Positions 7,622 through 63,647 of a stretch of DNA of 64,000 nucleotides are shown one piece after another. Made by a program: the position numbers and the translations under genes. Position 1 is the stretch's first letter. Each line of letters starts with the position of its first letter. This stretch comes from Pristiophorus japonicus (taxonomy: Eukaryota), in NCBI RefSeq assembly GCF_044704955.1, contig NC_091995.1, forward strand, positions 17,918,001 through 17,982,000, in the 5' to 3' direction. The notes beneath the pieces are model-generated. The model worked only from the letters and a program-made list of their open reading frames with translations, was not told where the DNA came from and made no database searches.

Positions 7622-7627
7622 TTTATT
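7622..7627 (-). promoter_or_regulatory. Putative polyadenylation signal (AATAAA) of gene A
   Basis: Conserved at the homologous position in copy B (22249-22254), close to the end of the conserved 3' block. Confidence 0.55.
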
Positions 7628-9249
7628 ACGAAAATAACACATACTATATAGGATTATGATTAAATGTAAGCAGTTATGGAACTAGGTTTATTGAACAGTA
7701 ACCGGTATGAATGCTGAACATGTTGGTATCCATTTTAACAAATGCATGAATCTGTTTATTTTTTCGTATAGCACGCCTCTAAGAAGAGGGGACTAATAAA
7801 TTTCATAAAAAGTGATAAATGTTATGAACTGATACGAAAGAGCTTAATGTTAAGCATTGGAGATTTCAAGTATATGCGATTTAATCATTTCCATGGATGG
7901 TTCTCCGATCATCGGCGTTGAAGATCCCGGAGGACCTCGAGTTTTCACCAAAGTTACGGCGGGAGAGTGAACCAACTCTGTGAAAATTGCGCCAGCTTGT
8001 CCATCCAGGACATCTCATCATTGAGACGGATTGTGACGGCTCCTCTTACTTCACCGAAGCGTACAGCACCGCTTCTCGATTCACGCAGCACTCTGTTTGA
8101 TTTCTCTCCTGCAGATTCAGTGTGGCGTATTGCAACTTGTCCTCACCCTCTCTCTATTGAGATGAAAGTGCTTCATTGTTGAATATTGTAAATTGAATAG
8201 AGCGTTTGGCATCAAACACAGTGTAATGATTAAAACCGACATATTGTGTAGTTTCAGTTGAAGAGAATTCACACCACTGAACATTCTACATATAATTAGA
8301 ATATTTATATGTCTGTCAAACGTTACAGGATTGAATACACCGTCCTAAATATTCCTGTTCTTTTGAATATATCACAGCGTTTCAAAGATTGCACAATTTA
8401 AATAAACAGCAAGGGGAAATAATAGACCTAAATAGCGCATAATTACAAATATAAAGGTAAAATCCAAGCATTTAGAAGCATTTCACAATTCACACTTAAT
8501 GACTTCACGAACAATGGATCAGTCAGCATTTAGGAAGGGCAGATTGACATTTGGGAAGAACCGTTCAGATCTTGCCATTCGCATGAAGGGTTCTAGCCCA
8601 ACGCTTACCCTGTGTTTTCTCTTTCAAGTGCTGATCTACTTTGCATATCCTGCATTTTCTGTGTTGACTTCAGATTTCCAGCGTTTTCTGGTTTCCTTCT
8701 TATCTCGACTGATCAAATGATGTGTATTTTTGTATGTGTGCGTGTGTTTGTGTAGAATCCTGGGTGCCCCTAGTTTGTGATCTATGTTATGCTTCCTCTG
8801 TGTACCTCGTGTATGTGCATGCACCTGCCTGTAGGTGTGTGCCTATTTGCATTTGCGAGTGTCTGTGTGTGTGAGTGTGTCTTTCTGTGTGTGTACAGGC
8901 GTTTGAATTCTCAGACTGTCAGATTTCATTTCCTGTTTGGCTCTCTGACGATTTGTAACTAATATTTTAATCCCCGGCTCTATTGGAATTTGATTTTCAA
9001 CTTGCTGTGCCTTTGCATAAAATTGGCGATCGGGATGCCCGCAATGCTAGCTTTACGCCTGTGTGGCAAGTTGAGAATATACCCCACAGCTACAAGCAGA
9101 AATGTTGAGGCCGTCCAATCTAGTTTCTATTTTAGATTGTTACACCCGACGGAGAGAATTCTTTATATTATAATCACCGTGGCAAAGTAAACAAGAGGTC
9201 AGTAGTTTTAAAAAAAAACATATATAGCCAAAGTCATTGCGCTACATAC

Positions 9250-9290
9250 CCGATGAGGATTTCGGCACTCAGAGCTGTCATTATTCCCCT
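9250..9290 (-). other. Gene A relic 41-nt tail exon (EGNNDSSECRNPHR), downstream of the stop codon
   Basis: tttatag|41 nt|gtatgt; same length and phase (1->0) as 23886-23926 in B and 53983-54023 in C. Confidence 0.7.
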
Positions 9291-9305
9291 CTATAAAGCA
9301 TAGAA

Positions 9306-9732
9306 AAAAGAAAGACTTGCATTTATATGGCGCCTTTGATGACCACCCGACTTCACAAATCGCGATACAGGGAATAAAGTACTTCTTAAAAAAGTTGAGT
9401 TACTGTTTAATGTAGGAAACGTGATCATGACCAGATAATCTGTTTTACTGATGTTGATTGAGGAATAAATAATTGTCAGGAAGAGATAACTCCCCTGCTC
9501 TTCTTCAAAATAGTGCCTGGGATCTTTTATGTCCGCATGAGATCGGAGACATGGACTCTGTTTAACGTCTCATCTGAAATATAGCAATCCTCCCACCACC
9601 CCACAGTGCAGCGCTCCCTCAGTACTGCACTGTCAGTGTTAGTTTAGATTTTTCTGCTATAAGTCCCTGGAGTGGGACACAAACCTACAACCTTCCGACT
9701 TAGAGGCGAGGTTGCTACCAACTGAGCTACGG
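9306..9732 (-). mobile_element. tRNA-derived SINE, family 1 (DeuSINE/SacSINE1-like); other copies ~23940-24357(-), 31785-32215(-), 49590-50030(+), partial 61715-61880(+)
   Basis: Pol III A-box head (tagctcagttgg) and degenerate B-box; 3' tail ..gcgccatataaatgcaagtctttc similar to L2 3' ends; several mutually similar copies in the window. Confidence 0.8.
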
Positions 9733-10279
9733 GAAATGACCCTGTGTAATTTAATATTACTTGAACTGTGTGTACAATACAACGCCACATAATGCGCCAT
9801 ACCTATAGCGCTATAATGCACTGTATTATTATGTTATAGGATCCAGCATAACATGGTAGAAAACAGTAGGACGCAATAAAATAAAATACAATAGGATGAA
9901 CTGCATTGCACAACAAGAAAACGATGCAATTAATATGGTCCAACATGTAATACTCTCCCACAGAATGTAAAACAGCGTAAGGTTTTTCCGTTTAACTGCT
10001 AATTTTAAACTGATGAGCAAAGCAATTTGATATGAGCGCACCCAGCATTCGTACGAGAACAGATTGACATCTAGACTAATCAATTATAATATACGATATA
10101 TCAATGAAACGAACATTACAATATTATGTAATAATTTCTCACAAATATCAGCACGTGATAAGAAAATCTTTCAAAATATTATATTAGCCTTATCCCTTAA
10201 CTCCTCAAATTGACTTTGTGACTAAGACGGCTAACAGGTTTCACTCAATAGCCATTCTAGAATCAAGAGTTATTCAACC

Positions 10280-10570
10280 ATAGAATCATACAGTGCAGAA
10301 GGAGGCCATTCGGCCCAACATGCCCGTGTCGTCTCTCTGAAGGAGCTACTAATTAGTCCCGCTCCCCCTGCTCTTTCTCGATAGCCCTGAAAAAAATCCC
10401 ACTTTAAAGTAGTTATCCAATTCCCTTTTGAAAGTTACTATTAGCTCTCACCAACGTTTCTGGCAGTGCATTCCAGATCATAACCACTCGCTTAGTAAAA
10501 TAATATCTCCTCATCTCCAAACCTGGCTGCTTTATGCCAGTTATCTTAAATTTGTGTCCTCTGGTTACCA
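10280..10570 (-). mobile_element. CR1 3'-end fragment (shared with 24895-25180)
   Basis: TRGHKFK..RYYFTKRVVMIWNALP plus tail. Confidence 0.8.
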
Positions 10571-10594
10571 GACAGAATACACTAAAACAAAACA

Positions 10595-10955
10595 TTCGTT
10601 CGCGGAATGTGGGCTTTGCTTAGCAAGGCCAGTATTGATTGCTCATCCCTAGTTGCCCTTGGAAGGTAGCGACAATCCACCAATTCAGAGGGCAGTTAGG
10701 AGTCAACGACATTTCTGTGGGTCTGAAGTCACTTTAAGGCCAGACCAGGTAAGGATGGCAGACGTCCTTCCCTAAAGAGACATTTGACAATAGTGAACCA
10801 GGTGGGTTTTATGACAATCTGATAGTTACTAGTTTTTTTTATACCAGATTGATTTCATTTTAATGAATTTAAATTCCCCAGTTGCCATGGATTATTAGTC
10901 CAAATTTCTAGGATTTTTAAGCCAGTAACAAATCCAGTATGCTAATGTACCCGCT
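10595..10955 (-). mobile_element. SINE family 2; other copies ~25203-25578(-), 59345-59730(-), 60680-61050(+)
   Basis: Shared core (..ggtctggccta..gtgactcca..cagcaatg..) and a 3' tail matching the LINE 3' ends at 15670-15870 and 57365-58115. Confidence 0.7.
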
Positions 10956-11136
10956 AAATAATCAGACAGAACAATACTGAACTCATGGTTAATGTGTTAT
11001 AACTGATGGACAAGGAAATTAACCAGATTATTAATTAATATCAAATGAAATCGAAGGAGTAAGTATTGGGTGTCTGCTAAAAGTGACAGGTTGTAAACAG
11101 TTCTTTCTGTTACACACCTGTTTCACGGATCACTGG

Positions 11137-11152
11137 CTAGAGCGGATCTATT
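11137..11152 (-). CDS. Gene A last coding exon (35-nt exon 11152-11118; K-IDPL-stop)
   Basis: tgttgctccag|35 nt|gtgtgt; TAG at 11139-11137 aligns to TAT (Tyr) in B. Confidence 0.7.
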
Positions 11153-14100
11153 CTGGAGCAACAGAGGACATCAGCAAAGTGATGCATTCACAAAATAAAA
11201 TACGCTGAAGAAATAGAAAGTGGATTCTTAAAAAGTAGTTCTATGTAAACAATTACTTCCTGGGTTGCTGAAGAGCGACTGTGAGCAGGGGAAGACAAAG
11301 AACAGTCAAAGAGCTGAGGTTATTGATTATTTCAGTCGCTTCTTATAGATATTAATTAGTATCGAATAAATTGAATCACATTTTGTGGGCAATTTTAACC
11401 AAATCCACGGAGGAACGGACGGGATCGGGTGCAACGTTGGGTTCACATTCCGCCTGATTTTGAAATAAGTTGGCGAGCAATATAGGGCGGTATTGAACCC
11501 GGCGTTTCATCTGATTCGGTTGGTTTCCCATCCGGTGCATTAAGATGAAATTACCAAAGAATTTGTCAATCACAAGGAATTCAGTAGGGTTCCAATTAGT
11601 GCTGTTACCTGTCTTACGACGCCGGCTGGCAACAACTAAAGTGACTATAACCATGATCAGGAGAGGCACGGCTCGCACAGCAAAGACGAATGGTGTGATC
11701 TTTAGATTGGACTGGCCGTTGCTGCCCTCTTCACCATCTGTGTGTAATTGTTAAGGTTCATTGTGAGACAGACCAGTCAAGAGCAGGGCAATGATCAAAT
11801 TGAGATTTAGCATCAGCAAATGTGACACGGATACTAATCCCTCTTGATATGGGCGATTATATTCATACTTAACATTGGCATACTTCAAACAAGGCCATCG
11901 ATTAAAATGCAAAATGTCACCGGTGGTCAACTGCAGCGTTTCCTTTCCTTGAAGTAACACTGGGAGAATTTTAATGTAAGGATGCTTAGTGGGCTGGTAC
12001 CCAAATCGTTTATTTTAAAAGGGATGTGGTTGGGGTGGGGAAGGGGGGGACGGGGCGGGTGGGTGTGGACGACCGTGTGAGTTCCGTTATCATAGGAAAA
12101 GTAATACGCTATTTAACCCCTCAAGCTTGCTCCGCCATTCAATGAGATCATAGCTGATTTGCAACCTAACTCCATATTCCTGAGTGCCTTTGTTTAACAA
12201 AAAGTTATCTATCACAGATTTTAAATTTACAATTGACTCAGTATCAATTGCCATTTGTGAAAGACAGTGCCAAACTTCGACCACCTATTGTGTGTAGAAG
12301 TGTTTCCTAACTTCGCTCTTGAAAAGTCTGCTTCTAAATGTTAGACTATGCCTCCGGTCCTAGAATCCCCAACTAGCTGAAATAGATTATCTGCATCTTT
12401 CCTATGTGTTACCCTTAATATCTTGAGAGTGTTGCTCCTCCCGCCGAGTTTTCCTGAATTCACTAGACCCTGGAGATTCATGCGGCCCCGAGCACGAACG
12501 AGAAAATTGTCCCCTCATACTTATGGGATGCTTAAGACAAACATCTTGATATTAGATTGCCGAATCTTGGTGGTCAACGCGGTTCTTTCGTGAATCCATC
12601 TTTGCATTTAGATGGACCGCAATGTATTCATTTCTATTGACACACATAACTCTATCTGCCTCTACATCCATTTACAGGCTGGCAATGACATCTAACTTAT
12701 CGACGGATTGACCTGTTATTCCTAATATTGACACGCTGCAATTTCAAGGCTCACGTGTTGCTCTCGGAAAGGGTCTGCAGTTTTCGCCTTACACACTGCA
12801 ACTGCGTTGACCACTGGTCTATAGCCCTACATAAAATGATACCCAACTGAATCTCATTAATATCATCCATCTATTTATTCTAAAAGAAATAATTCTCAGT
12901 ATACGGGCGTCTCGGGCAAGGTTGGCTTTAATTGCCCTTCCCTAATTGCCCTTGGTAAGATTTTGGTTGGCCTTCTGCTTGAACCGCTGCAGTCTATGAG
13001 GTGAAAGTGAACCCACAGTGCTGTTAGGGAGTAGTTACAGGATTTTTAAAGGAACTGCGATACAAGGTCAAGTCAGGATGGCGTGTGACTTGGAGGAGAA
13101 ATTGCTCCCATGCAGCTGCTGCCCTTATCCTTCGAGGTGGCGTTGGTCGCGGGTTTGGGAGTTCCAATTGATTTAATGGATCATTTGGCTATATTGACAA
13201 TATTATTCCCTCCAATCCCATATGATTGCGTTCAATTGCATTCGTAAGAATATCTCCACCAATCCAAACTTACCTTGATCACCATGTTTCACGAGAAGTA
13301 TTGTGCCTGTTCCGTATGCAGTACCGATTCGCGCGAGCTCCACTTTGCAAATATAGAAACCTGTATCTCGGAGGCCCAGTTGGATTATTCTAATAGACGC
13401 TTTTTTCCTTTGGCGGAAATCCTCTTCGTCTGCGCGGAACACTCTACCTCTGTATTCGTCTGTGCTGTTGGAAACTTCAATTCCATGTTTGGAGCCTCGG
13501 TGCCATTTGTAGCCGCCGATTCCTGCGGGACCTTCGTATGTACAGACCAGGTCCGCTGTCTGACCCACGGTTTTGGTGAGAGATTGCGGGCTCTGAAATA
13601 CTGCGATGTTTCCACCATTAACTGTGGAAATGGGAAAAACAGACCATTTATAAATAGGCAGTGCACGTCTTTGCGTTAAAGCACGCCGTGGAAAGCCTCG
13701 TTTTAATCACATATCCTTCTGAGTATTTTGGGTAAGGTATTAATGGCCTTTAATTTGGGGTATAATAAACAGAAAATGCTGGAAATACTCAGCAGTTCGG
13801 GCAGCATTTGTGGAGAGAGAGCAACAGAGTTAACGTTCCGGGTCGATGGCCTTTTACCAGACCTGGAAAACAGGTAGAGATGTGCCAAGTTTTGAGCAAG
13901 TGCAGGGAGCAAGGAAAGAGGGGAGGGGCGGAAAGAAAAGGGAAGGTCTGTGATAGGGTGAAAGGCAGGAGAGATTAATTCACAAAAGGAATGAAGGTGC
14001 AAGGCATAAGGAGATTGTAATGGGACAAGTAATGAAACAAAAGGTGTCTGGAAGAGGTATAAATGGTTAACTTGAGGAACATTGGAACTGGAAATGGAGT

Positions 14101-15551
14101 GTCTTTTGATGTTGTGTGCACTCCTAGGTCAAGTACAGAATGGATCTGGAATAAGGTACCTCTGCCCCTTTCGAAATAAGCATTAATTTAATTTCAGTAC
14201 TCCCGATTGCGTCGGCGTGATATATATATAAGAACATAAGAATTTAAGAATTAGGAGCAGGAGTAGGCCATTCGGCCCGTCGAGCCTGCCCCGCCATTCA
14301 ATAAGATCACCACTGATCTTCCACCTGAACTCCACTTTGCCGCCTGATCTCCATATCACTTGATTCCCTATGACTCCAAAAATCTATCTATCTCACCCTT
14401 GAATATATTCAGAAACTGAGCATCTACAGCTCTCTGGGGTAGAGAATTCCAAAGATTCATGACCCTCTCAGAGAAGAAATTCCTCCTTATCTCCGTCTTA
14501 AATGGCCGACCACTTATTCTGAAACCATGCCCTCAGTTTCAAAATTACCCCCGAGTGAGTCAGTCCCACTCCTTTCCACCATATTTTTGCAATATGTTCC
14601 TTCAAGTATTTATCCACATTCCCTTTTCAAGGCTGCTATTGAATCTGTATCCACCACGCTATGAGGCAGAGTACTCTGGCAATATGTACGTTAGGAAGGA
14701 AAATACATTGTGCGCTCCTGGACCGGAGACAATAAATCTAGTTACCCGAGAGCCGATCCGTGTCTCACGGTTAGCTTGCAATCACTCCCTACTCTTATAA
14801 TCTCACTTTTTCTCACACACACGTATGCACACGTACGATTGGAATGCATTTCTCTCTGTGTGTTCTATGCACAATGCGCTCCTCAACACGCTTTTTACAT
14901 TCTTAGCCTTCACGTCTTGATTTATTTTGTCTTCCCTTCCAATATTGCCAGCCTTGATGCTGCTCTGCGCCATGTGGCATTGGCCTTTCAGCTAAATGCC
15001 TCAATTCAAAATAGGCAACCTCGAAAGCGTTAGCTTCTCTATGCTGACTCCGGCTTAACTGCGGGATTGATTATATTACCAGGACTTGATTCATTACCAC
15101 GGCGCTGAACTTTTAAGATGGCAATTCTCGTGTCTATGAGAATGTCCGCACGAACCTGATGTTGTTTTTTAATTGCAGGCGAGCTGACCATGAAAATAAA
15201 ATTAGTTGAATCTACAATCTGGTATTGAGAACCGCAAATAGCTGATAGCAGAATAAGATTGCATCAGGTTCACAGATGAACTAGTGTTCACATACATAAA
15301 AAAGAAGAGCACATCGCTATGGGTAATTAATAACTAGTTAAATCATGCAATATTTCATTAACGTCATTATGAAATCAATAGAAATGATAATCAGTCTCTG
15401 CGGCCACGCCGCAGCGCCCAGTTTACGCGCAGGGGCTAAGTTGATATTCTCCCCTATGTTTTTATATGAACCTGGTGTGCAAGAAATTGATATTAAAACG
15501 CTGCTTACCGAAGAACATAGTGATTGCCCAGGAAACTGCAGCCCAATGCAT
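11137..15551 (-). CDS. NCR3-like: Gene A: NKp30/NCR3-like single-IgV activating-type receptor; exons 15551-15509, 13621-13274, 11737-11609, 11278-11257, 11152-11137
   Basis: All junctions GT-AG and in phase; leader MHWAAVSWAITMFF, VJ-type IgV, TM FVFAVRAVPLLIMVIVTLVVA with Arg, tail SRRRKTVALQQPRKIDPL*. Confidence 0.85.
11257..11278 (-). CDS. Gene A 22-nt cytoplasmic micro-exon (VALQQPR)
   Basis: Strong polypyrimidine tract tctttgtcttcccctgctcacag; donor gtaatt; phase 1->2. Confidence 0.75.
11386..11556. mobile_element. Palindromic MITE-like element; related copies ~26010-26160 and 57148-57327
   Basis: Termini ggcaattttaacc...gatgaaattacc form an imperfect inverted repeat; internal self-complementarity. 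Confidence 0.5.
11609..11737 (-). CDS. Gene A stalk + transmembrane exon (with Arg)
   Basis: cacacag|129 nt|gtaaca; DGEEGSNGQSNLKITPFVFAVRAVPLLIMVIVTLVVASRRRKT. Confidence 0.88.
12090..12430 (-). mobile_element. CR1 3'-end fragment (shared with 26662-27000)
   Basis: VVEVWHCLSQMAIDTESIVNLKS corresponds to the ORF2 C-terminus, followed by 3'UTR. Confidence 0.75.
13274..13621 (-). CDS. NCR3-like: Gene A Ig V-set (VJ-type) exon, NKp30-like
   Basis: ttccacag|348 nt|gtaagt; B-strand Cys, IGGYKW, EVSNSTDEYRGRV, DTGFYICKVE, GTGT; pattern matches NKp30 IGSVTW / EVRNGTPEFRGRL / DASIYVCRVE / GNGT. Confidence 0.93.
13765..14070. mobile_element. Interspersed repeat (probably a Penelope-like element end); copies ~28323-28625 and 62925-63160, degenerate reverse copies ~8500-8700 and 23145-23330
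   Basis: Shared start aacagaaaatgctggaaatactcagc..gagagagcaacagagttaacg; family assignment is from recollection only. Confidence 0.5.
14230..14550 (-). mobile_element. CR1 3'-end fragment
   Basis: (TAAGAACA)-type tail and ORF2 C-terminal sequence. Confidence 0.8.
15509..15551 (-). CDS. Gene A leader (signal peptide) exon
   Basis: agaATG..43 nt|gtaagc; MHWAAVSWAITMFF; phase 1 matches the V exon; conserved in B. Confidence 0.82.
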
Positions 15552-15669
15552 TCTCGCTGTAGGCTGTGGAAAAATTTCAGAAAAGAAATTCAGATAGTGC
15601 ACAGAGAGGAATATTAGAGTAATGTGCAGTGGGAGAGTGAAGCCGAGTTAGTGTACGGATGTGAGGTAA

Positions 15670-15870
15670 TATCGCCGTTCGTTCACCGTCGCTGGGTCAA
15701 AATTCTGGAACTCCCTCCCGAACAGCACTGTGGGAGCACCTTCACCACACGGACTGCAGCGGTTGCAGAAGGAGGCTCGCCACCACCTTCTCAAGGGCAA
15801 TCAGGAATGGACAATAAATGGTGGCGTTGCCAGCGATGTGCAGAACCCATGAAAGAATTTTTAAAAAGAA
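15670..15870 (+). mobile_element. LINE 3'-end fragment directly upstream of gene A
   Basis: Same family as 32410-32625 and 57365-58115 (ggactgcagcggtt..gaaggcggctc..caataaatg). Confidence 0.7.
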
Positions 15871-16069
15871 AATAAGAAATAGGATGTGGAGTAGGCCGTT
15901 TGGACCCTCGAGTCTACTCAACCATTCAGTAAGATCATGGCTGATCTTTTACCTAAATTCCACCTTCTGCACTATCCCCATATTCCTTAATTCCCTATTT
16001 GCCCCCAAATTTCTTGATTTATGTCTTCAATATAGTCATTTTGCCGATCCAGTCCATGCTGGCATTTAT

Positions 16070-18065
16070 CATAGAATCATCGAATCCTAGAAATTTACCG
16101 CACGGAAGGAGACCATTCCGCCCATCGTGTCCGTGCAGCTGAGAAAGAGCTATACAGCCTAATCCGAATTTCCAGCTTTTGGTCCATAGCCTATTAGGTT
16201 ACGGGCCTTCAAGTGCATAGCCAAGTAATTTTAAATTTGGTGAGGGTTTCTCCCTCTACCACTTATTCACGCAGTAAGTTCCACATCCCCATCACCCTCT
16301 GGATGAAAACATTTCCCCTCAAATCCCCTCTGTACCTCCGACCAATTACATTAAGTCTACGCCTCTGGGTGTTGCCCTCTCTGCTCAGGGAAGTAGGTCT
16401 GTTCAGCCCACTCTATCTAGGTCCCTCATAATTTAATACACCTAAATTTGGTCTCCCCTCAGCCTCCTCTGTTCCAAAGAAAACAAATTCCAGCCTACCA
16501 ATCTTTCCTTATAGATAAAGTTCTCCAGTTCAGGCAACATCCTCGTAAATTTCCTCTGTACCCTCTCGAATGCAATCACATCCGTCCTGTAATATGGTGA
16601 CCAGAGCTGCAATCAGTACTCTAGCTGAAGCCTAGCAGGTGTTTTATAAAGTTCAAACTTAACCTCCCAGCTCTTATAATCTATTCTTCGGGGCTAATAA
16701 AGGAAATATATCATATGCCTTCTTAACCAACTTATCTACTGGTCCTGCTACATTCTGCCATGTCAGACCTTCTCTAAAGCCTTGCTAAATCCATATACCC
16801 TATATAAAATGCACTGCCCGAATCGACCCTCGTTATTATCTCCTCAAAAAATGTAATCAAGTTAGTCAGACGTGAACTTCCCTTAACATATCCATGCAGA
16901 CGACACTTGATCAAACCGTGTCTCTCCAAATGAAAATTTATCCTGTCCCTCAGAATTTTATCCAATACTTTTCACACCACCGAGATTAGGCTGATTGGCC
17001 TCTCATTACTTGCTCTATCGCTTGCTCCCTTTTTAAACAAGAATATAATGTTAGCAGTCCTCTCTTCCTCCGACACCACACCTGTAGCCTGAGAGGATTG
17101 GAAAATGATGGCCGGAGCTTCTGCTCTTTCTTCCCTTGCTTCTCTTAAGAGCCTGGGACGCATTTGATCCGCGACTGGGATGTATCCACTTTCAAAAATG
17201 CAAAGCCCTTAATTCTTCCTTTCTCACTATGTTTATTTAATCTAATGTTTCACACTCATCCTCCCGCATTACAATTTCTGCATCATCCTCTCTTTTGTCA
17301 AGAACCATACCAACATCTGCTGCCTCAACGCACATATTACCTTTATGGTTTCTAATAGGCCCTACTCTTTCTTTAGTTATCTTCTTGCTCTTAATGTATT
17401 TATACAATATGTTTGGTTATTGCTTGACTTTACTTGTCAATATTATTTCTGCCCTCTCTTTGCTTTCCTAATTTCCTTTTTAGTTGCACCCCTGCACTTT
17501 CTATACTCCTGTAGAGTCCCTGCAGTATTGAGCCCTCGGTATCAGTGATAAGCCTCCTTTTAAAACTCCTACCCTGTATGCCCTTTGACATCCAGGGGGC
17601 TCTAGATTTGTTTGTCTGGCCGGTTTACTTTAAAGTAACATACTTATTCTGAACCTTCATGATCTCCTCATTGAATGACTCCCATTGCTCTGTCATCGAT
17701 TTGCCTTCAAGGGGTTGGTTTCAGTCCACTTTGGCCACATCATATCTCAGTTTAGTAAAATTGAACTTTCCATAATTCAGAAATTATATTCCTGGTCTAT
17801 CTTCGTCCTTTTCCATAAATACCCGAAATCAAACAGAATTGTGATCTCGAGCACCACAATTCTCTCCCACTGATATCTCATCCACCTGCCTGGTCTCAAT
17901 CCCTAAAAGTAAGTGCAGAACCGCCTCCTCCCTTGTTGGGCTTGCTATGTACTGGCCAAAAAAAAGTTACACTGAATGCAGTTTAGAAATTCTGCATCGT
18001 CTCTACCCTTGACATTAATTACCACCCATTTAATATTAGGGCAGTTGAAATCTCCTACTATTACC
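16070..18065 (-). mobile_element. Degenerate CR1 ORF2 with internal deletions
   Basis: Minus-strand fragments RDRINFHLERHGLIK..HGYVKG..LTNLITFFEE, PRLLREAREE..IFLFKKG. Confidence 0.85.
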
Positions 18066-18334
18066 GTCGCTCCACTCAAGCCCCCTCCCGTCTTTCTTCA
18101 TCTAAATATTTCAGCATAAACTTCTGTTCCCTCCTCCCTCAAATACGGGTCTAGCCCTCCCCCCCCCCCCCCCGCCTTAAATGCACCTCTACTTTTCACT
18201 TTAACCACTTCCTGTGGTAGAGAGTGCCACATTCTCACCACCCTCTGGGTACAGAAGTTTCTGCTGAATTCCCTATTTGATTTCTTGGTGAAAATTGTAT
18301 TGATGGCCTCACAAGTGGAAACAGGATAAAATGA

Positions 18335-18990
18335 TGTTGATTTTTTCGCATTTCTTCATTGACGTGTTTTCTGTGCAGAATATGGCGCATCTGCAAGTTA
18401 CTAAACTTCATGTCGGGTGTGCTAATCTGCACGAAGCTCCATAACTTCAGCTGGATGCGCACTAGCAATGAGATTTTGCAAAAGAACTTGAGGCAAAGTC
18501 CGTGTCTATTAATGACAACGAGCAGAGTTCAACATCTATAACTGGAGTGCCAGGTGTTGGAGATCAGAAAGCTGCTCAGTTACAAAGACGTATGGTGTTG
18601 CTTCTTACTTATAGTCACGTAATTTACGAGGAACATTCATCAACTTGAGTTGATACTGCACATTGCTGAGGAACTCGTGAGTGAACTCCATACCTGTCTG
18701 TGGTCAGCTCCCTCCTCCTTTCAAGTTAGTGTCATGACATGGAACAACAACAGCAACAGTCCAAAATCTACAGCAACTGATTAAATTCAGACGTTACACC
18801 TGGGCCTTAAATTTACATTGTGCGAATGAACAATAAAGCAAAAGGAAACTTATCGACTTCACGGGCAATCATATTATAGGTCATTTTAAGGAAATTGTTA
18901 AATTGTTCATTTAGAAACACTTCAAAGATTCCAATAAGATAACATGCAAGGGGATTTGATCACATAGAGCGGGTATTTCATTCATTTTTG
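18335..18990. repeat. ~650-bp non-TE-like segment, inverted paralogue of ~33300-33930
   Basis: 18341-18430 reverse-complements to 33841-33930, and similarity continues to the adjoining CR1 tail in both copies. Confidence 0.85.
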
Positions 18991-22155: not shown

Positions 22156-22248
22156 CTTCCCTTGAGTGTAACGTAAAGCTTTCATTTCAATAAAAGGCAC
22201 AAAGGAAAATCAACAGAACAACCTGACTTGGGTCAACTGAGTAGAATC

Positions 22249-22254
22249 TTTATT
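22249..22254 (-). promoter_or_regulatory. Putative polyadenylation signal (AATAAA) of gene B
   Basis: Homologous to 7622-7627. Confidence 0.55.
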
Positions 22255-38062: not shown

Positions 38063-38069
38063 ATATTCC

Positions 38070-54400: not shown

Positions 54401-57400
54401 GGTTGAATGCTAGCCGGACTAATGAATGTCGCACCAATGTGTTATATATTGAAAGGCTAATATAGACAATTTGTACGTAACTTGAACGTAACAAACCGGA
54501 ACAATCCTTACCATTTGGGTAGATATCGTCATAGATCTCGTCATCGCTAAACCATAAAGGGAGGAAGAAGCAAATGATTACGTGTTGAAAACATCCTGCA
54601 CAGGTCAGAGAAACATAAAGGCAGCAATATGTCACAGAGAGACCTACGCACCATTGCAGAGTTTGGGAGAAGTCTGTGGAAACACAAAAGGAACAAACAA
54701 CAAAATCGTAACTCTGTTATATCTGAAACCATATTTAGCACAGCTGTAGTTTAAAGCGCGTCACAGTTTTTTTTTAAATCATTTGTCTATTATAAATAAT
54801 AAATCTTTATCTACGGGCAGTGGGAGTGGAAAGGGGTTAGTGCAGTTGGATCTCATTCCATTATGCAACCCAGTCTCATCAAACTTTCGGGTAAGTGCAT
54901 CCTTTCTCGCTTTCGAGAAGGACAATGTGTAAAGAGAGTTTAGGACGGTTGCGAGCCAGAATCCAATGCGCGTGGTTGAACTGAATTTAATGAGGAGGCG
55001 GTTATTTGCACTGTGTCTGGCTGATTGGTACTCCGCCATCACATGACCTGATTGTTAATTGGTCCCCTTGGAGGATAATTCTCACCCAGAAGTTTCTCTG
55101 GAGTGCGTAATTGGAACCGCAGCCCAAGTTCTGAGTGACTTTGCAGAGTGTCATTCGAGCCATTATGACTTCAGAACTCCTCTGCAAGCAGCCAGAGAGG
55201 ATAGAGATCACAGCAAAAGCCTCCCAAACCCTTGTCCCCAGCCCAAGTGCATGCCTCCACTCCCCCCAGCCGCAGTCCCGGACATCCCAGCCCAAGTTCA
55301 TCCCTCATCTCCAGCCCGTGCTGCATTCCTAGCCGAAGTCCATTACCTCAGCGCGAGTGCTGCCTCCCCCAGCCGAAGTCCCTTACCCAAGTGCAAGTGC
55401 ATGACCTTAACTCCCACCGTAGTTGGGGCATTTTGTGTCGGTCATGGATTGTTAATAGGTTTATTGGGTAGGAAGTGAACAGTGACAGTTTAGTCACTTC
55501 CAGATTTCATCCACTGTGGGTGTAAAGGGGGTTTGTAGAATATGAGACATCTTCCCTGAACGCTCTCCCTTCCAATCCCCATCCTGCTTCCCCATCTCTC
55601 TCTCTCCCCATCTCTCACTCCACTCTCTTTCTCCCCCGACTTTCTCTCTTCCCCCCCCCCCCTCCGCCCCCATGTTTGTCTCCTCTTCCCCGACGTTTCT
55701 CTCTCCAGTCTTCCTGCCCGCCCCCGTTGTCTTTCTCTCTCCCCCGTATGTCTCTCTCCACCCGCGTATCTCTGTACTTCCTGGTGTCTCTCACTCCACG
55801 CCCCCCCCCCCGCAGTGCCTCCTTCACCCACCCCCCATGTCTCTCTCCCCCTGCAATGTCTCTCTCTCCCTCCCTCATGTCTCTCTGTCCCCTCCCCCCT
55901 TCACCGTGTCTAACTCTGTCACCCCTACCTGCCCACTCGCCGCCTCTATCACCGCCCAACGCCTCTCTCTACCCAGCCCGCTCTCCCCCCGCCCGTTCTG
56001 CCGCCTCCTCGCGCTCCCTGCCCGCCACCTCTCTCCCCACCCGCTGCCTCTCTCTCCCCGCCCATCTGTTGTCTCTCTAACCCCCGCCCGGTCGCTCCTC
56101 TCTCCCCGGCCGCCGTCTCTCTCCCCTTCCGCCATCTCTATCCCCCCCGCCGCCCGCCGCCTCTGTCTCTCTCCCCCACTATGTCCGATGTTTTCTCTCC
56201 CACAGAAGGCCGCAATAATGCAAAGACTGGAAGCAACGTTTCAGCAGCGGATTACATGCGGACTCATCGGAGCCCCACTTTCAGTTGCGATTTCTGCTCC
56301 GAGTCTGCGCATGCAGGAGAGGCATCGGTGCAGAGGACGCAGGTGCAGAAAAAACACAATGCATATCGGCACTCAGATATAAATAAGCATAAAAGTGAAA
56401 ATGTGTGCCTGATCCAACAAATCAAAAGAGCTGTCATACTGACAAAACAAAAATAATTCTTCAGAGTTTGTTGCTAAAGTATAGCATTGCCGATGCATTT
56501 GCTACCTCGAGAATTGACACTGATGGCGAGCCTCCCACATTCTACCCTACGTAAAGTAGAGGTGATCGAAATCTCGGCTGCCCATATCCTGACTCACACC
56601 AAGTCCCACACACCCTTCTGCTCGATTGGCTCTGTGTTAAGCAACTGCTCGATTTCAAAATTCCCATCTTTATTTACAAATCCCTCCATGGCCTTGCTCA
56701 TCCCTATCTCTATAATCTCCTCCAGCCCAAGAGCCGCCCCTCCCAGAGAGATGCGCTCCTCTAATTCTGTCCTCATGAGCATCCCTGATTATAATTGCTC
56801 AAACATTGGTGGCCGTGTCTGTAGCTGCTAGGAACCTAACTTCTGGAATTCCCCACGTAAATCTCTCTGCCTCTCTCCCGCTTTCCTCTCCTTATGACGC
56901 TCCATAAAAGCTACCTCTTTGACCAAGCTTGTGTTCATCTGCCCTAATGTCTTTTTACCTGGCTCGGTGTCAAATTTATTTTTTTGTTTTATAACACTCC
57001 TGTGAAGCGTCTTGGGACGTTTTACAACGTTAAAGGTGCTATATAAATACACGTTTTTGTTGTTATTATGGAGCACAGGGAACTCTATTTTCCTGGCGGG
57101 CGCAATAATTCAATAGCCCTCTAACAGTGGTTGTTGCTGATGCTGTCGCCAATTTTAAACTAAGGCCGGGCAGCAAACCCGCAGATCGGGTGGAACGTCG
57201 GTCTTACACTCCACATGATATCAACCTCCATTGACTTCAATGGTGAGTATAATCAGGACAGGGTGTAAAACCCATATTTCTCCCAATCTCATCAATTCCC
57301 GATGGTCGGGTGAGGTTATAATTGGCCCACGAGGTCAAGAACACAAGGGAAAGGGTATTACATCTCCAACAAGCGAGAGTCTAACCACCGCCCCTGAGAG

Positions 57401-60400
57401 TCAATGGCATTACCATCGCCGAATCCTCACCATCAACTTCCTGGGGGCATCAACATTGACCAGAAACTTAAATGGCCCAGCGACTTAATACTGTGGGTAC
57501 AAGAGCAGGTCAGAGGCTGGGTATTCTGCAACGAGTGTTTCACCTCCTGACGGCCACCCGGCCCCCCACCTGCACCGCGCCCCAAAGTATTTCTACCTCC
57601 AACAAGGCACAATTCAGGAGTGTAATAGAATTTCTCCACTTGCCTGACTGAGTGCAGCTCCAACAAGACTCAAGAAGCTCGACAGCATCCAGGACAAAGC
57701 AGCACGCCTGATTGGCACCCCATCTACCACATTAAATGTTCACTCCCTCCACCCCCAGCTGCAATGTGTACCATCTGCAAGATGCATGGAGCAACTCGCC
57801 AAGGCTTCTATGGCAGCACACCCCAAACCCACAACCTCTACCTAAGAGGACAGGGGCAGCAGGCGCATGGGAACACCGTCACCTGCAACTTCCCCTCCAA
57901 GCCACACACCATCCTGAATTGGAAATATATCGACCATTCCTTCATCATCACTGGGTCAAAATCATGGAACTCCCTATCAGCACCGGGAGCAGAAGACCTT
58001 CTACGTAAGGACTGCAGCGGTTCAAGAAGGCAGCTCACCGCCAAGGTTAATTAAGGAAGGCCAATAAATGCTGTCCTCAACAGCAACGTCCACATCCCAG
58101 GAACAAATACAAAAAATAGCAAGCAGCAAGCTACTGAGGTTGTTCCTCAGCAATTCACACACGTATAATATTGAGGACTCATTGAAATTTGTCAACTGGG
58201 AAAATTAAGTGATTCTTTAATCGGCGGTGCTCACCATCTACATCAGTGTCATCATAGAGCGGCCCGTTCCTTAGGGACAACAGACAAATACAGAAAATTA
58301 GTGCCACAGCATAGTTAGTAAACTAACTATAGAACAATTATAATACAACAGGTTGAAAATTTAAACTCTGAGATTCACTGACCTTCCAAATTGCGGGGGA
58401 ACATCTGTAAAAATAAAGTTAAGCATGAAAGATTTGTAGCGTTAATGCAATTTGTCTAAAGACATTTTGAGTACAGGAAACTGTTTCCATTTGCGGGAGG
58501 GTTAGTAACCTGAGGACATAGATTTAAAATAATTGGCAAAAGAACCAGAGGGGAGTTGAGGAGATTTGATTTATGCTGTGAGTTGTTATGATATGGAGTG
58601 CACTACCTGAAAGAATGGTAGAAGCACGATCCCTTCATCTACTGCACCCAGATGTTCTTTTCCTAACACCCCACCCCCGCTCCCCGCCCTTCGCAGGTTC
58701 CAGCCCAGATGTTCTCACCTTCCATCCCACCCAACATGCTCCGGCCTGATATATTCTGTTCCTTTCCCCTGCTTCCCCGGCTCGATATTCTCTCCCTCAC
58801 CTCCTCGATGCTCCTTCGGCGATATTCTCTACCCCGCCGCCCCACCCCATGCTCCAACCCCGATCTTCTCTCACCGCACCGCCGCCCCACGCCCCGCCGC
58901 CCGATGATCCTGTCCTGAACTTCTCCACGATGTTCCAGCCCCGTTGCTTCCATCCCTCATCCCCAATCCTCCTCCGGCCAGCGAACCTCCCCCTCCCACT
59001 ATTGCACGCATCTGATCCGCCCCCCACCCAACCTCTCTGTAGTTTGGTGCCACAGGCCTCTCCATCTAGGTGGCTGCGGGTGGGGAATCAAAGGTTGGAA
59101 ATGAAAATCAGGCCCCACCGTTAAGTTCAGCAGAGCTCGCGGTAAACCCGTCCCCGCGGGTTTCTCAGCCGCTTTCATGCACCTCTGCCTCCCGATTAAA
59201 ATTCAGGCCATTGTATCATGCAATCTCCTACCCTAGTGAGACCAGTTAGTTCGGTGTGTCTCACTGATCCAAACACTGGCTACCACTGGTACTGTGATTC
59301 AGTAGTACACCAGAGCAACGTAAACGCTACGCATGTTTTTTTTTGTATTCGTTCACTGGATGTGGGCATTAACTGGCAAGGTAATAGTTATTGCTCATCC
59401 CTAATTGCCCACGAGAAGGTGGTGTTGAGCTGCCTTCTTGAACAACAGAGGGCAGTTAAGAGTCGACCAACATTGCTGTGGGTCAGAAGTCACATATAGG
59501 CTAGACCAAGTATGAATGGCTGATGTCCTTCCCTAAAGGACATTCGTGAGCCAGATGGGTTTTTATGACAATCCGGTTGTTTCATGGTCACCATTACTGA
59601 TCCTAGCTTTTTCAGTCCAGATTGATTTAATTAACTGAATTTAAATTCCCCAGCTGCCATGGTGGGATTTTTAAAACTCGTGTCTCCGGATCACTAGTCC
59701 AGTAACATAATCACTATGCTACCATTCCGCGTGTGCATCACTCACCAGCTGGATTAATTTCATCACAGGTGCGAAAAGCGCTCTCCATCCAGGGGCTGGG
59801 AAAGAAGAAAAGAAAATCACATAGCTAGGGGAAAAAAAATCCAGCTAATTAAATAACGTTTTACCCTCTATAACCACGAACCAACCTTTGTGCTTGCGGA
59901 GCTAACTCTGTGGGATTAAAACTCAAAAATTAAGGTTTATCCATTGATGCAAGCAAGACATTTGATACTGTGAAAAAAGATTAAAATTATATAGACCTCT
60001 TATGTCCATCTAGGAACAATAATCAGTAAAACTACTGAAGTCCTTTCCGAACAATAATTGGTAATTAAAAAAATAATGCTTAAATGACTATTTAATATAT
60101 CGACCACTTAAATACTCACCATTAAAATGAATGTTACTGCAAGGCGCAATATTGCTTTGGGATTAAAACAGAAAAGTGAAAAGGTGTCAATGGATTGCAT
60201 ACCTAAATGCATATCAATTCAATAAAAACACCAAGAGAAGTGTCATCTTCACTTCAATATTCATTGACCGTTGTAAGCGTGCAAGGTCGAGGGCTGCAGG
60301 AATAAAAGGTGATGTAGAAAGTGTTACAACTTAACTACGGGCTTGTGGTAGCTTAATGGTTATAAGAACATAAGAACAGAAGAAATAGGAGCAGGATTAG

Positions 60401-63400
60401 GCCATTCGGCCCATCGAACCTGCTCCGCCATTGAACAAGATCATGGCTGACCTTCGGTCTCAGCTCCAACTTCCCGCCCGATATCCATATACGGTGATTC
60501 CCCATGAGCCAAAAATCTATCCCGCTCTGTCTTGAATATACTCAATGACTGAGCATCCGCAGCCCTCTGGGCTTAATAATTCCGCAGATTCACAATCAAT
60601 GGAGTGAAGAAATTTCTCCTCATCTCAGTACTAAAGGAGACTCCCCAGGCAATGGAAACATCCCTCAGCGTCTGCTCTGTTATGATAGTGGACATAATGC
60701 AGAGGCCTGTAGTAATGATGTGAAAACATGAGCTCAAATCCCAACACGGCAGCTGGTAAGGAATTTTTATTCAGTTAATTAAATAAATCTGGAACAAAAA
60801 GCTTGTATCAGTAATGGTGACTATGAAACTACCGGATTGTCGTAAAAACCAGTCTGGTTCACTAACGTCCTTTAGGGAAGGAAATCTGCCTTCACCCAGT
60901 CTGGCCTATAAGTGACTCCAAACCGACAGCAATGTGTTGAGTCTTAATAGGTCTCTGAAATGGCCTAGCAAGCCACCACCAATGTGGCTCACTATCACCT
61001 CCTGGAGGGCAATTAGGGATGGGAAATAAATGAATAAAAAATAAATAAACTTTTCATATTTGAATGTACAGCTTTCCAACTACAGTTCGGTCAAGATCAG
61101 CTAATGGTTTCAACTGAACGATAGCAGTATCGTTTATATAATAAGCCGACTCAATCCCTAACCATCTGCAAATGCTTAGTATTAAATATAATAATGTAAT
61201 ATAATTTCTGTACATAAACTGCAAGCAGCTCACTGCAAATCGTGAATGTAAAAGGAATAATCTAAGAATTGCTGTTAATTATATTTACGGAGGGACACTA
61301 GCTTCATAATGGAATATGGAATTTTTCGAATTCTATTTTGACAATGTGAATTCATTCATCCATTAACAAGGCAGGAAAGCTAAATATCACACCAATCAGC
61401 TAAAGGTTCATTTCCGAATTTAGCCCGGCTTATTTTCTAACCTATTCACGCAAAACGTATTTATCCTGATAAAACAGTGCAATTTGAACAAGTCACTTAT
61501 GAGCTAAACGAAAGTCATCATTCATGCTAAATCACAAAGCAAAAAGACACATTATAGAGCAGTAGAAAAACATTTATACATCATTTTTGAATACAACATG
61601 TTTTTTTTGGGGGGGGCGCGGGTAGGTTTACTAACCTCCGAAATTGTAGGCGATAAATTGTAGAAATCAAAATTAACAATTAATTTGAATAGATACAACA
61701 CTAAAATCAGAGTATCTGGCCATTATAATATTACTGTGTGTGGGAGCTTGCTGTGCTAAAATTAGCTGCCGTGTTTCTTGCATTACAACAGTGACTACAC
61801 GTTAAACGAAGTACTTCTTGATTAAGGCGCTTTGGGAAGTCCGGATATCGTGAAAGGCCTATATAAATGCAAGTCTTTCTTTATAAAAACATCAAAGGTT
61901 TTAGCGCAAACCAAATGTCACTGGCATTAGCTTGCATTTGTATGAATGTATCTACTTTGTGGATATATCCGGAAGCAAAATATTGTTCTTTACAATATTT
62001 ACCTTTTCTCATACCGCAAACTGCGGAGAACATGAGGAAAGCGGCTAAAGCTCCAGCAATGATGTACACGGATGTGAAGCTGAACTGTGACGCCTCGGAT
62101 TTCTCTGTGGTCGGTTTTCCTGGTCGGAAGACAAAATAAGAGATTGGTTTCACCCAGAACACCACTTGCTACCTCCCACTTTCCCTGCGAGTGAATGTAC
62201 ACTGTGCCCCGAAACCAACCAATATATATCGTAATTTCAATGGACTGATGCAGTCGTGCTGGTTTTATCCATCTCTCCTACGTTTGCTGATTGGGCTTGT
62301 GATATTAGTTATTTATATTTTATTATTTTAACGGCTTTTTAAAAATTAATTAAAGTCAATTGTTATCGAAAATATATCGTGACAAAACTCTTAAAGATTA
62401 TAATCTCGTGATTGAATTAGCTGTTCTCAGTACTCTACGCGTTTTTTATGTGTCAGAGTGTATGCATATGTGTTAATGTAGGCATATGTGTTAATGTAAG
62501 CTTGTGTGTGAGTGTTTATATGTGTGTGTATGCATGCGTATCTGCGTGTGAGTGTGTATCCGTGTGTATATGTGTGTGTTTGTGTCTGTATATCTGTCTG
62601 TGTCTGTATCTCTGTTTGCATATCTGTGTGTATATGTGTATGTATGTGTGTGTATGTGCGTGTGTGTGTATAGCTGTGTGTGCACATGTGCGTGTGTGTG
62701 TGTGTATTTGTGCGTGTGTGCATGTGTCTGGGTGTATGAGTGCGTTATTCTATGGGTGTGTGTTTGTATGCGTGTGTGTCTGTATGTGTAAGTTTGTGCA
62801 GACTATCATAACTTTTTAATAAATGTTTTGGTGATAAAGTGGAGATATTTATTAAACACAAAGGGAGACATGCTTATAACCCATGCATCCGGACATAGAA
62901 ATAGAAATAATAACAGAAAAAAATAACAGAAAATGCTGTATTTACTCAGCAAGTCAGATGGCGTCTATTGAGAAAGAAACAGAATTATCGTTTCAGGTCG
63001 ATGGACTTGAGTCAGTATTGGAAAAAAAAGTTAGAGGTGTAACAGATTTTAAGCCATGCGGGGCAGGAATGTGGGGACGGAGGAAAGAATAAAAGAGAAG
63101 GCCTGTGATAGGCAGAAGTGATTATATGACAGAAGGTATGATAGGACAACGCAAAAGTCATAGAAATATAATATTTTCCTCATTTTCATTAGGTTGACAT
63201 ATTTTCTTTACGTGTAAGATCCTCCAAGTTTAGTCTGCTGTGATATAGTAACGGACTGACCGACTCGGGAATTATGGTGGAAAAGTTTGCAAGAAGCAGT
63301 CAACTCACGCAGTACATTAAGCATTGTTCCTTGTCCGTATGTTTCGGCCACTTCCATTAGTTCCACTTTGCAGTAGTAATTCCCTGAATCATACTGTCTC

Positions 63401-63647
63401 ACGTCTTTGATAGAAATGGAAGCGTCCCTCCTTTGCGTGAAATCCTCGGCACTTGCCCGGGATAGACGCCCGCTGAATTCCGTCGTTTGGTCGCTGACTT
63501 CAGGTCCACCTTTAAAGTTTTTGTGCCAATTGAAATTACCGACCCCTGGAGGCCCTTCATGCGTGCAGTTCATGAGCACCGACTGCCTCTCCGTGGCGTT
63601 AATGAAGGACGGGATTTTAATTACTTTGATGTTGTCTGCAGCAATTC
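51403..63647 (-). CDS. NCR3-like: Gene C (5' partial): NKp30/NCR3-like IgV receptor with uncharged TM and long Tyr-motif tail; exons 63647-63309, 62119-62003, 60293-60269, 60154-60120, 59907-59886, 59795-59746, 58404-58383, 58269-58235, 54673-54652, 54546-54512, 54023-53983, probably 53914-53896 and 51410-51403
   Basis: Every exon is flanked by AG/GT, and the phases chain without a stop: tail RK-ALDLARLQ-RNIAPCSNIHFN-ELAPQAQ-SPWMESAFRTCDEINPA-DVPPQFG-RNGPLYDDTDVD-DFSQTLQ-CDDEIYDDIYPN-GMASSVDVSDSNFV-AHSSTS-GL*; the last two exons are less certain; no leader exon found in the window. Confidence 0.8.
51583..52100 (+). mobile_element. Solo LTR inserted in a CR1 3' tail
   Basis: TGTT..AACA ends, AATAAA at ~52049, flanks ggtc/gatc (imperfect 4-bp TSD); flanks rejoin into a CR1 tail. 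Confidence 0.72.
52185..53310 (-). mobile_element. CR1 3' portion
   Basis: LQRDIDRLSEWA..GKCEAIQFG, RPHLQYCVQF, GHSLRIRG, (TAAGAACA) tail. Confidence 0.92.
53491..53590. repeat. 50-bp AT-rich tandem duplication
   Basis: ttgaattttaaaacataattaaattccaatttgatt(a/c)attttaaataagg x2. Confidence 0.9.
53983..54023 (-). CDS. Gene C 41-nt tail exon (GMASSVDVSDSNFV)
   Basis: ttttcttccttttcacaaattatag|41 nt|gtaagt. Confidence 0.78.
54512..54673 (-). CDS. Gene C micro-exon module 4 (22 nt 54673-54652 + 35 nt 54546-54512; DFSQTLQ-CDDEIYDDIYPN)
   Basis: tttccacag|..|gtgcgt; tggtttag|..|gtaagg; 105-nt intron. Confidence 0.83.
55560..56180. repeat. C/T-rich low-complexity tract
   Basis: Mostly (CT)n and Cn on the + strand; the overlapping long ORFs are low-complexity. 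Confidence 0.85.
56570..57065 (+). mobile_element. L2 LINE 3' fragment
   Basis: ..DWL..KQLLDFKI....FTNPSM, ..FWNSPRK.., tail tgtgaagcg..ttgggacgtttt..taaaggtgctatataaat. Confidence 0.72.
57365..58115 (+). mobile_element. LINE 3' fragment (RT C-terminus)
   Basis: Frameshifted ..IDQKLKW..AGQRLGILQRV..RSVIEFSPLA..KLDSIQDKAARLIG. Confidence 0.75.
58235..58404 (-). CDS. Gene C micro-exon module 3 (22 nt 58404-58383 + 35 nt 58269-58235; DVPPQFG-RNGPLYDDTDVD)
   Basis: tttttacag|..|gtcagt; tccctaag|..|gtgagc; 113-nt intron. Confidence 0.83.
59746..59907 (-). CDS. Gene C micro-exon module 2 (22 nt 59907-59886 + 50 nt 59795-59746)
   Basis: atcccacag|..|gttggt; tttcccag|..|gtgagt; 90-nt intron. Confidence 0.78.
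60120..60293 (-). CDS. Gene C micro-exon module 1 (25 nt 60293-60269 + 35 nt 60154-60120)
   Basis: ttcctgcag|..|gtcaat; tcccaaag|..|gtgagt; 114-nt intron. Confidence 0.75.
60363..60640 (-). mobile_element. CR1 3'-end fragment
   Basis: (TAAGAACA) tail and ORF2 end. Confidence 0.78.
62003..62119 (-). CDS. Gene C stalk + transmembrane exon
   Basis: tcttccgaccag|117 nt|gtaaat; RKPTTEKSEASQFSFTSVYIIAGALAAFLMFSAVCGMRK; no charged TM residue. Confidence 0.85.
62445..62795. repeat. Degenerate (TG)n microsatellite
   Basis: Alternating purine-pyrimidine tract of ~350 bp. Confidence 0.92.
63309..63647 (-). CDS. NCR3-like: Gene C Ig V-set (VJ-type) exon, NKp30-like
   Basis: ttggcag|339 nt|gtgagt; MNCTHEG..VGNFNW..EVSDQTTEFSGRL..DVRQYDSGNYYCKVE..YGQGTMLNVL. 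Confidence 0.93.

Follow-up and report, generated by a model that had tools for sequence, protein, structure and literature searches.

The 64,000-nucleotide stretch of the sawshark Pristiophorus japonicus analyzed here (the window; contig NC_091995.1, forward-strand positions 17,918,001 to 17,982,000) carries three genes, A, B, and C, whose immunoglobulin variable (IgV) domains support their membership in the NCR3/NKp30 family. We favor, at a probability of roughly 55%, a reading in which gene C would represent an old, self-signaling lineage, and A and B would be the copies of a duplicated gene with immunoreceptor tyrosine-based inhibitory motifs (ITIMs) in its tail, since turned into an activating and inhibitory pair. 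The features of paired receptors that can be read from the DNA itself are that A and B are neighbors with similar ectodomains, and that A has a derived transmembrane (TM) arginine and a TAG stop ahead of an intact ITIM exon. Sequences, reading frames, splice sites, and homologies were read directly, while exon usage was deduced throughout from the sequence and from protein models of other species. Homology searches were done exon by exon, and joined (spliced) models were translated and aligned locally.

Exactly three V-set exons were detected in the window, based on tblastn of the window against itself and on Pfam, all on the minus strand at approximately 13.6 kb (A), 28.2 kb (B), and 63.6 kb (C). 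All three hold the Cys...Trp...D-x-G-x-Y-x-C landmarks and a Y-G-x-G-T-x-L-x-V J-like motif inside a single exon, the latter in the form YG(T/Q)GT.L.V, as germline-joined VJ-type IgV domains; the three same-strand genes with related VJ-type domains claimed in a preliminary description of this locus were thus found. Against solved structures, the V domain of gene A matched human NKp30 best (3e-9, with the next family at 2e-4), as did that of gene C (2e-11), there with a small margin over antibody V domains (2e-9). A HMMER scan of 1.84 billion representatives returned 381 matches, and those with names included nurse shark NCR3 (QTT61898), bamboo shark NCR3, horn shark models labeled "NCR3-like" and "SIRP-beta-like", NCR3-like proteins of lungfish, frog, and sturgeon, and NCR3 of turtle and lizard. 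A second protein search matched the gene A V domain to nurse shark NCR3 only (QTT61898, 65% identity over 96% of the domain) and gave no match for that of gene C, which is 62%–67% identical to horn shark XP_067865368.

In a tree of V domains from shark NCR3-like proteins, among which all three sawshark domains fall, A and B (74% identical in this domain) are sisters (99/95) within a clade of nurse shark, bamboo shark, horn shark, and catshark proteins, and gene C pairs with horn shark XP_067865368 and the second V domain of a merged catshark model (100/96). Because the tree was built without an outgroup from other immunoglobulin superfamily families, it shows orthology groups rather than family membership. 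The earlier assignment of the genes to NCR3/NKp30 is supported by human NKp30 as top structure match, by the identity to nurse shark NCR3, and by this placement. The limits given to the cluster in the preliminary description also fall on real features, 63647 being the first base of the gene C V exon and 7622 the end of the AATAAA beyond the last exon of gene A.

Genes A and B lie in the two copies of a tandem duplication (Table 1) that are 84% identical in DNA, about equally in exons and introns. Using orthologous proteins as guides, we recovered one seven-exon layout for both. A leader and the V exon are followed by an exon for the stalk and TM helix, by two micro-exons, X of 22 nt (phase 1 to 2) and Y of 35 nt (phase 2 to 1), by exon I of 41 nt (phase 1 to 0), and finally by an exon that carries two canonical ITIMs, LQYATL and VLYA/SSV. 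Each copy has an intact exon I and an intact two-ITIM exon, and the TM exon joins in frame to the last exon by way of exon I in both; with X and Y adding up to 57 nt and I to 41 nt, inclusion or skipping changes the reading frame of the ITIM exon. The preliminary description did not mention these two shared exons. We regard X and Y as real exons of this NCR3 clade because their homologues stand in the same order in nurse shark NCR3 and in horn shark models, and the ITIM tail as old because lungfish NCR3-like proteins have the same ending. On these comparisons, A and B are sawshark-specific tandem duplicates of a conserved ITIM-type NCR3 gene.

Across the five coding exons of the A/B pair, one frameshifting indel was seen (at an exon edge) where 4.8 were expected at the intron rate (P(<=1) = 0.05), and the ratio of nonsynonymous to synonymous divergence (dN/dS) between A and B came to 0.45 in the V exon and 0.42 in the ITIM exon. 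Synonymous divergence of these two exons was 0.37–0.39 (Nei-Gojobori), twice the intron divergence of 0.16–0.18, an excess that may be a method artifact arising from transition bias or CpG sites. In each of the two genes, a frame-broken look-alike of the ITIM exon also lies approximately 500 bp upstream of the real one (8700–8630 and 23355–23270, minus strand, with residues ..RQEGNQQM.. / ..WKSEV.TEN.GYAK..), apparently an old tandem duplicate whose decay preceded the split into A and B.

Every splice site of gene A is canonical (six of six donors and all acceptors). Its TM arginine, like that of NKp30, is placed approximately nine residues into the helix from the outer side and is best regarded as derived because five orthologues have uncharged helices, with M, V, or A at this position. 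Micro-exon X of gene A is homologous to ATPEQLE of nurse shark NCR3 and ATRQQPA of a horn shark protein, and the product of its exon I resembles TNNSSERRGTNGR of the horn shark protein. The chain of leader, V, TM, X, and Y encodes a 185-residue precursor with an 18-residue tail free of tyrosine; termination at the TAG in Y would leave the last exon untranslated. Both the TM arginine and the 18-residue tyrosine-free tail had been claimed before and were borne out. With this combination of a TM arginine and a short tail, absent from B and C, gene A looks like an adaptor-type receptor from a tail-bearing ancestor, adaptor binding being predicted.

Gene B has an uncharged TM helix and damage to both splice sites of its V exon. 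An out-of-frame AG lies 2 nt upstream of the lost V-exon acceptor, and in-frame substitutes are available for both sites (acceptor at 28171; donor CAAG/GTGGTG at 27857). Micro-exons X and Y of gene B have no donors and therefore cannot be internal exons, so its ITIMs are in frame only if the TM exon is spliced to exon I; the chain of TM exon, exon I, and last exon gives a 208-residue product with both ITIMs in frame. The preliminary description had allowed B neither a TM arginine nor a long tyrosine-bearing tail. The arginine is indeed absent, removed with a 9-bp in-frame gap, but we do not accept the second part because of the 208-residue product just described; a short tail would need the donor-less X, and the two-ITIM exon is intact. 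Nor does the proposed role of B as a decoy find support in a gene whose last exon is open and retains both ITIMs, in frame once X and Y are skipped. Gene B is likely either an inhibitory gene that would run on substitute splice sites or a young pseudogene, and not a clear decoy.

Gene C combines an uncharged TM helix, as claimed earlier, with a tail encoded by four successive pairs of X and Y micro-exons. The eight micro-exons give at least 77 residues, which are collinear with the tail of horn shark XP_067865365, with the same module order and split-codon residues (alignment score 212, versus 33±6 and a maximum of 58 for shuffles), and 35-nt exons bounded by AG and GT and having Y-[DE]-[DE] at codon 5 number two, against 0.0025 expected. 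A tail of about 110 residues with tyrosine motifs had been proposed; the tyrosines are there, in YDDT and YDDIYPN, and the proposed length stands beside a count of at least 77 residues made without a terminal exon. Tyrosines are present in Y3 and Y4, whereas Y1 has none in sawshark or horn shark and Y2 has a Cys where horn shark has a Tyr. Gene C is supported as a predicted long-tail type with an exon chain conserved in horn shark.

A hemITAM, the half form of an immunoreceptor tyrosine-based activation motif (ITAM), consists of three acidic residues, one further residue, and then YxxL/I. DDE-I-YDDI of exon Y4 presumably fits this pattern, although its tyrosine is not conserved (His in horn shark), and YPN of the same exon we take to fit the Grb2-type YxN. 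The tail of gene C most likely offers phosphotyrosine docking, by which the receptor would signal on its own. A bolder version, which we consider improbable, would make C an undescribed ancient branch of the NKp30 family common to squalomorph and galeomorph sharks, signaling free of adaptors through a tail whose modules arose as tandem duplicates of a two-micro-exon unit (one exon of 22 nt, rich in proline, and one of 35 nt, acidic and with YxxI/T) and forming with the A/B pair a three-way system (adaptor-coupled, ITIM-inhibitory, and self-signaling) on one ligand family.

A DNA-level search for homology between the micro-exons of A and C gave repeats and chance matches only, an ESM Atlas search with the horn shark tail gave no usable match, and repeat finders run on the C tail region gave CT-rich low-complexity arrays only. 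One such array lies at 55500–56200 within the X4-side intron, and a (TG/CA)-like microsatellite block occupies 62420–62820 in the intron between the V and TM exons. In isoforms X8, X5, and X7 of the horn shark gene C orthologue, the V exon is joined straight to the tail modules and the TM exon is skipped; skipping of the sawshark TM exon, which is 117 nt long and in frame, could possibly yield a soluble form. Between B and A, at 20941–20989 on the minus strand, two adjacent weak tblastn matches (LNYFLSVNP and IPASPQPLY; E ~1–12) to the C-terminal end of the same horn shark orthologue sit in a 1.5-kb stretch exclusive to the B copy of the duplication; they could be what is left of a C-type terminal exon, or be due to chance.

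The favored reading can be laid out as a history. Gene C would be an old lineage, common to horn shark and catshark, with an uncharged anchor and a long acidic tail bearing prolines and tyrosines. In the ancestor of A and B, the leader, V, TM, X, Y, and I exons would have been followed by a two-ITIM last exon. Once the gene was duplicated, copy A would have acquired the stop codon in micro-exon Y and the arginine, which sits in the outer third of the membrane helix, such that its standard transcript would specify an NKp30-like receptor that depends on an adaptor and has a tail of 18 residues. B would have dropped three codons around the arginine position and lost the donors of X and Y, and its simplest transcript would run from the TM exon to exon I and read both ITIMs. 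A and B would then form an activating and inhibitory pair, unless the damaged V-exon splice sites have already silenced B. Adaptor coupling and the direction of signaling are predictions drawn from these features.

A number of points weigh against this history. The gene C motifs PLYDDT and EIYDDIYPN, 16 residues apart, fit neither an ITAM, an ITIM, nor an immunoreceptor tyrosine-based switch motif (ITSM), and the Y4 tyrosine is replaced in horn shark, as noted above. The patterns used here were two YxxL/I elements separated by 6–12 residues for an ITAM and (I/V/L/S)xYxx(L/V/I) for an ITIM. The leader of gene C was not found in the 353 nt upstream of its V exon and probably lies beyond 64000, and a search for its terminal exon and a fifth module ("module 0") gave no convincing match, an acceptor at 54023 being a weak candidate. 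Under nonsense-mediated decay, the 50–55 nt rule applies to the distance between a stop codon and the last exon junction; the TAG of gene A lies 60 nt before that junction if exon I is included, and a gene A message with exon I could be a target. The remaining points, which concern the lesions of B, the divergence of the V exons, and the alternative use of X and Y, are also those on which two other explanations draw.

The stronger of these, to which we give about a one-in-four weight, is that A, B, or both are decaying copies, with the arginine, stops, and splice lesions as neutral damage in a fast-turnover cluster, and with C and ITIM-type genes elsewhere as the functional members. Gene B has five lesions at or near splice sites, both V-exon sites included, which fits a young pseudogene, and in A two introns lie downstream of a premature stop. 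The copies are no more alike in their exons than in their introns, and V-exon dN (0.17) is close to the intron divergence, so constraint at the protein level is weak or mixed with diversifying change; nine derived changes were counted in the V domain of A and nine in that of B. For B alone, with half of the 4.8 expected frameshifts, the shortage is not significant. Set against this, all coding exons of both genes are open, with the single frameshifting indel reported above, every splice site of A is canonical, and the V domain of B has changed no faster than that of A. Furthermore, the two changes in A coincide exactly with the defining marks of the activating partner in other paired families.

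It is somewhat less probable that the difference lies in isoforms rather than genes, with X, Y, and I as cassette exons and each gene giving both short-tail and ITIM-tail forms in the manner of the long and short tails of CEACAM1. With X and Y skipped, gene A too reads both ITIMs, in a 222-residue protein that would combine them with the TM arginine, and the gene-level split between A and B is consequently a putative one. Models from other sharks point the same way: nurse shark NCR3 stops three residues past exon Y, whereas horn shark isoforms continue through an I-like exon to the ITIMs; one horn shark isoform has other tail exons, one bamboo shark model has no X and Y, and the horn shark isoforms of gene C mentioned above lack the TM exon. 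The frame changes brought about by the 57 nt of X and Y and the 41 nt of I would serve such a switch. These models are predictions whose RNA support is unstated, however, and every isoform of A that contains Y ends at the TAG, whereas B cannot include X and Y, so the repertoires of forms open to A and to B must differ.

The scheme of the preliminary description, in which A is adaptor-coupled, C self-signaling, and B a signaling-dead decoy or secreted V-only protein as three fixed designs, is the least probable of the three, since, although B lacks the TM arginine, would have a tail of approximately 10 residues ending at the TAA of X if X were spliced in, and would read through its deleted V-exon donor to a stop after 15 codons, its X and Y have no GT donor and so are not internal exons, its exon I and two-ITIM exon are intact and in frame when these are skipped, and an in-phase substitute donor (CAAG/GTGGTG) is at hand. 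Of the expanded NCR3 family that it envisaged, the multiple copies are supported, as is the opposition of charged-TM and long-tail members; the decoy is not.

Multi-copy, divergent NCR3 genes in sharks have been published (Kinlein et al. 2021, as cited in PMC10450919 and PMC12272517), and the nurse shark family is recorded there (Immunogenetics 73:333, doi 10.1007/s00251-021-01209-6; GenBank MT914154-914161, per PMC12227049). Like the sawshark genes, nurse shark NCR3 belongs to a multi-copy divergent family with a VJ-type IgV domain in one exon, and QTT61898 has the same order of stalk/TM, X, and Y as A; it differs in having no TM arginine and in keeping the tyrosine in Y, and the A/B duplication occurred later, in the sawshark line. 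Our search of the literature, outside of which the content of Kinlein et al. 2021 falls, found nothing on NKp30 with an ITIM in sharks or Xenopus, and no sawshark genome paper was found in it.

Human NKp30 (PDB 3NOI, 3PV6, 6YJP) resembles A in its single V domain, short stalk, outer-third TM arginine, and short tail, but it is a single gene in mammals, has neither the ITIM exon nor the micro-exon tail, and shares approximately 30% sequence identity. The established paired families (KIR2DL/2DS, Ly49, SIRPalpha/beta, PILR, and teleost NITR) share with A and B the arrangement of neighboring genes with similar ectodomains, the contrast between a charged TM with a stop-shortened tail and ITIM remnants downstream (A) and an uncharged TM with ITIMs (B, where their translation is predicted), and the derivation of the activating form from the inhibitory one. 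They differ in that the V domain here is of NCR3 type, an inhibitory B would need two dead micro-exons to be skipped, and a third neighbor, C, has a different tail. In PECAM-1 and CEACAM1, tails are built of several very short exons whose inclusion or skipping decides whether the ITIMs are read; their ectodomains are unrelated, and the modules of gene C differ in being tandem duplicates of a two-exon unit.

The orthologues of gene C are horn shark XP_067865365/67/68 ("signal-regulatory protein beta-2-like") and the second half of catshark XP_038671257. The tail modules of the horn shark protein match those of gene C in both order and junction residues; it differs in having five modules, in placing its tyrosines partly in other modules (SNYDEI, TIYHDI), and in the listed isoforms without a TM exon. 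The catshark C-type protein differs from gene C by a TM arginine and by ending in a 17-residue read-through of the TM-exon donor, so the switch to an arginine and a short tail recurs between species. XP_038671257 is one RefSeq model that merges an A-type gene (with an ITIM tail) and a C-type gene, so both types are neighbors in catshark too.

Among public annotations of NCR3-like proteins, a TM arginine with a short tail is found in Chiloscyllium plagiosum, bichir, frogs, and amniotes, and others have ITIM tails; the architecture is therefore not new in kind, and A, B, and C add members to a known kind of system. The part of it that is least described so far is the micro-exon tail conserved in the C lineage. 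As to linkage with the MHC or with MHC class III genes, a trait expected of the NCR3/NKp30 family, one record joins a bichir relative to PRRC2A.

To our knowledge, NKp30 is the only natural-killer receptor traceable across jawed vertebrates. If the favored reading is true, an ITIM-bearing inhibitory NCR3 of sharks was duplicated into an arginine-anchored form without the tail, by the same route as the activating KIRs and Ly49s of mammals, which would suggest that the adaptor-coupled NKp30 of mammals is one outcome of a recurrent switch and not the ancestral state; the conserved micro-exon tail of C would then be a third signaling solution. Such a finding would be of value to comparative immunologists, although it opens no new kind of system.

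Table 1. Features of the three NCR3/NKp30-family genes, in window coordinates (exon assignments predicted; a slash in donor sequences marks the exon boundary)
Feature	Position	Strand	Details
Tandem duplication unit with genes A and B	7250..31580	.	7250-15670 matches 20349/22161-31580; blastn 80-84% identity over ~8.4 kb
A leader exon	15509..15551	-	ATG at 15551; MHWAAVSWAITMFF; phase-1 donor TCG/GTAAGC; tblastn to catshark and horn shark orthologue leaders
A VJ-type IgV exon	13274..13621	-	phase 1/1; perfect donor AAG/GTAAGT; second in-frame acceptor 13600; Pfam V-set
A stalk and TM exon	11609..11737	-	helix ITPFVFAVRAVPLLIMVIVTLVVA, Arg CGA 11675-11673, then SRRRKT
A micro-exon X	11257..11278	-	22 nt, phase 1 in/2 out; VALQQPR; identified by AG/GT and frame
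A micro-exon Y	11118..11152	-	35 nt; TAG 11139-11137 at position of Tyr in gene B and nurse shark; closes 18-residue tail
A exon I	9250..9290	-	41 nt, phase 1 in/0 out; GNNDSSECRNPHR; 17/20 pyrimidines before TTTATAG; donor CGG/GTATGT
A last exon	8046..8153	-	open; ITIMs LQYATL, VLYASV; TAA 8048-8046; AATAAA 7627-7622; tblastn E 2e-10 to catshark tail
B leader exon	31420..31462	-	MNWAAVTWAITMFS; donor CCG/GTAAGC
B VJ-type IgV exon	27857..28171	-	frame open; ancestral acceptor AG changed to CA; donor gone via 4-bp deletion
B stalk and TM exon	26214..26333	-	9-bp in-frame gap removes A-V-R codons; uncharged 19-residue helix PLVYAAPLLIIVIITVVVV, then RRRRKR
B micro-exon X relic	25877..25898	-	in-frame TAA; donor GT changed to AT
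B micro-exon Y relic	25741..25775	-	TAT Tyr codon kept, LDPVYAAV; donor GT changed to GA
B exon I	23886..23926	-	intact; GNNDRSGSRRPNR; acceptor and donor as in A
B last exon	22684..22791	-	open; ITIMs LQYATL, VLYSSV; TAA; in frame with TM exon via exon I when X and Y skipped
C VJ-type IgV exon	63309..63647	-	phase 1/1; Pfam; PDB best NKp30 2e-11
C stalk and TM exon	62003..62119	-	117 nt; uncharged helix FSFTSVYIIAGALAAFLMFSAVCG; donor AAG/GTAAAT; canonical phase-1 sites
C tail, four X+Y micro-exon pairs	54512..60293	-	all AG/GT; X 25 or 22 nt, Y 35 nt
C pair 1	X1 60293-60269; Y1 60154-60120	-	
C pair 2	X2 59907-59886; Y2 59780-59746	-	
C pair 3	X3 58404-58383; Y3 58269-58235	-	Y3 PLYDDT
C pair 4	X4 54673-54652; Y4 54546-54512	-	Y4 DDEIYDDIYPN

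The window is otherwise transposon-rich vertebrate DNA, with no other cellular gene found in it and no ligand candidate within it. Between C and B, at 39389–43371 on the plus strand, lies a long terminal repeat (LTR)-retrotransposon-like gag-pol with a CCHC zinc knuckle, a reverse transcriptase, and an integrase remnant, broken into several open reading frames (ORFs) by stops and frameshifts. Reverse-transcriptase fragments of the long interspersed nuclear element (LINE) type are many, at 385–5944 (plus), 35570–38937, 44206–45292 (plus), 19003–19680 (minus), and 52497–53100 (minus), and a 687-aa ORF at 3881–5944 matches RVT_1 at 2e-33.

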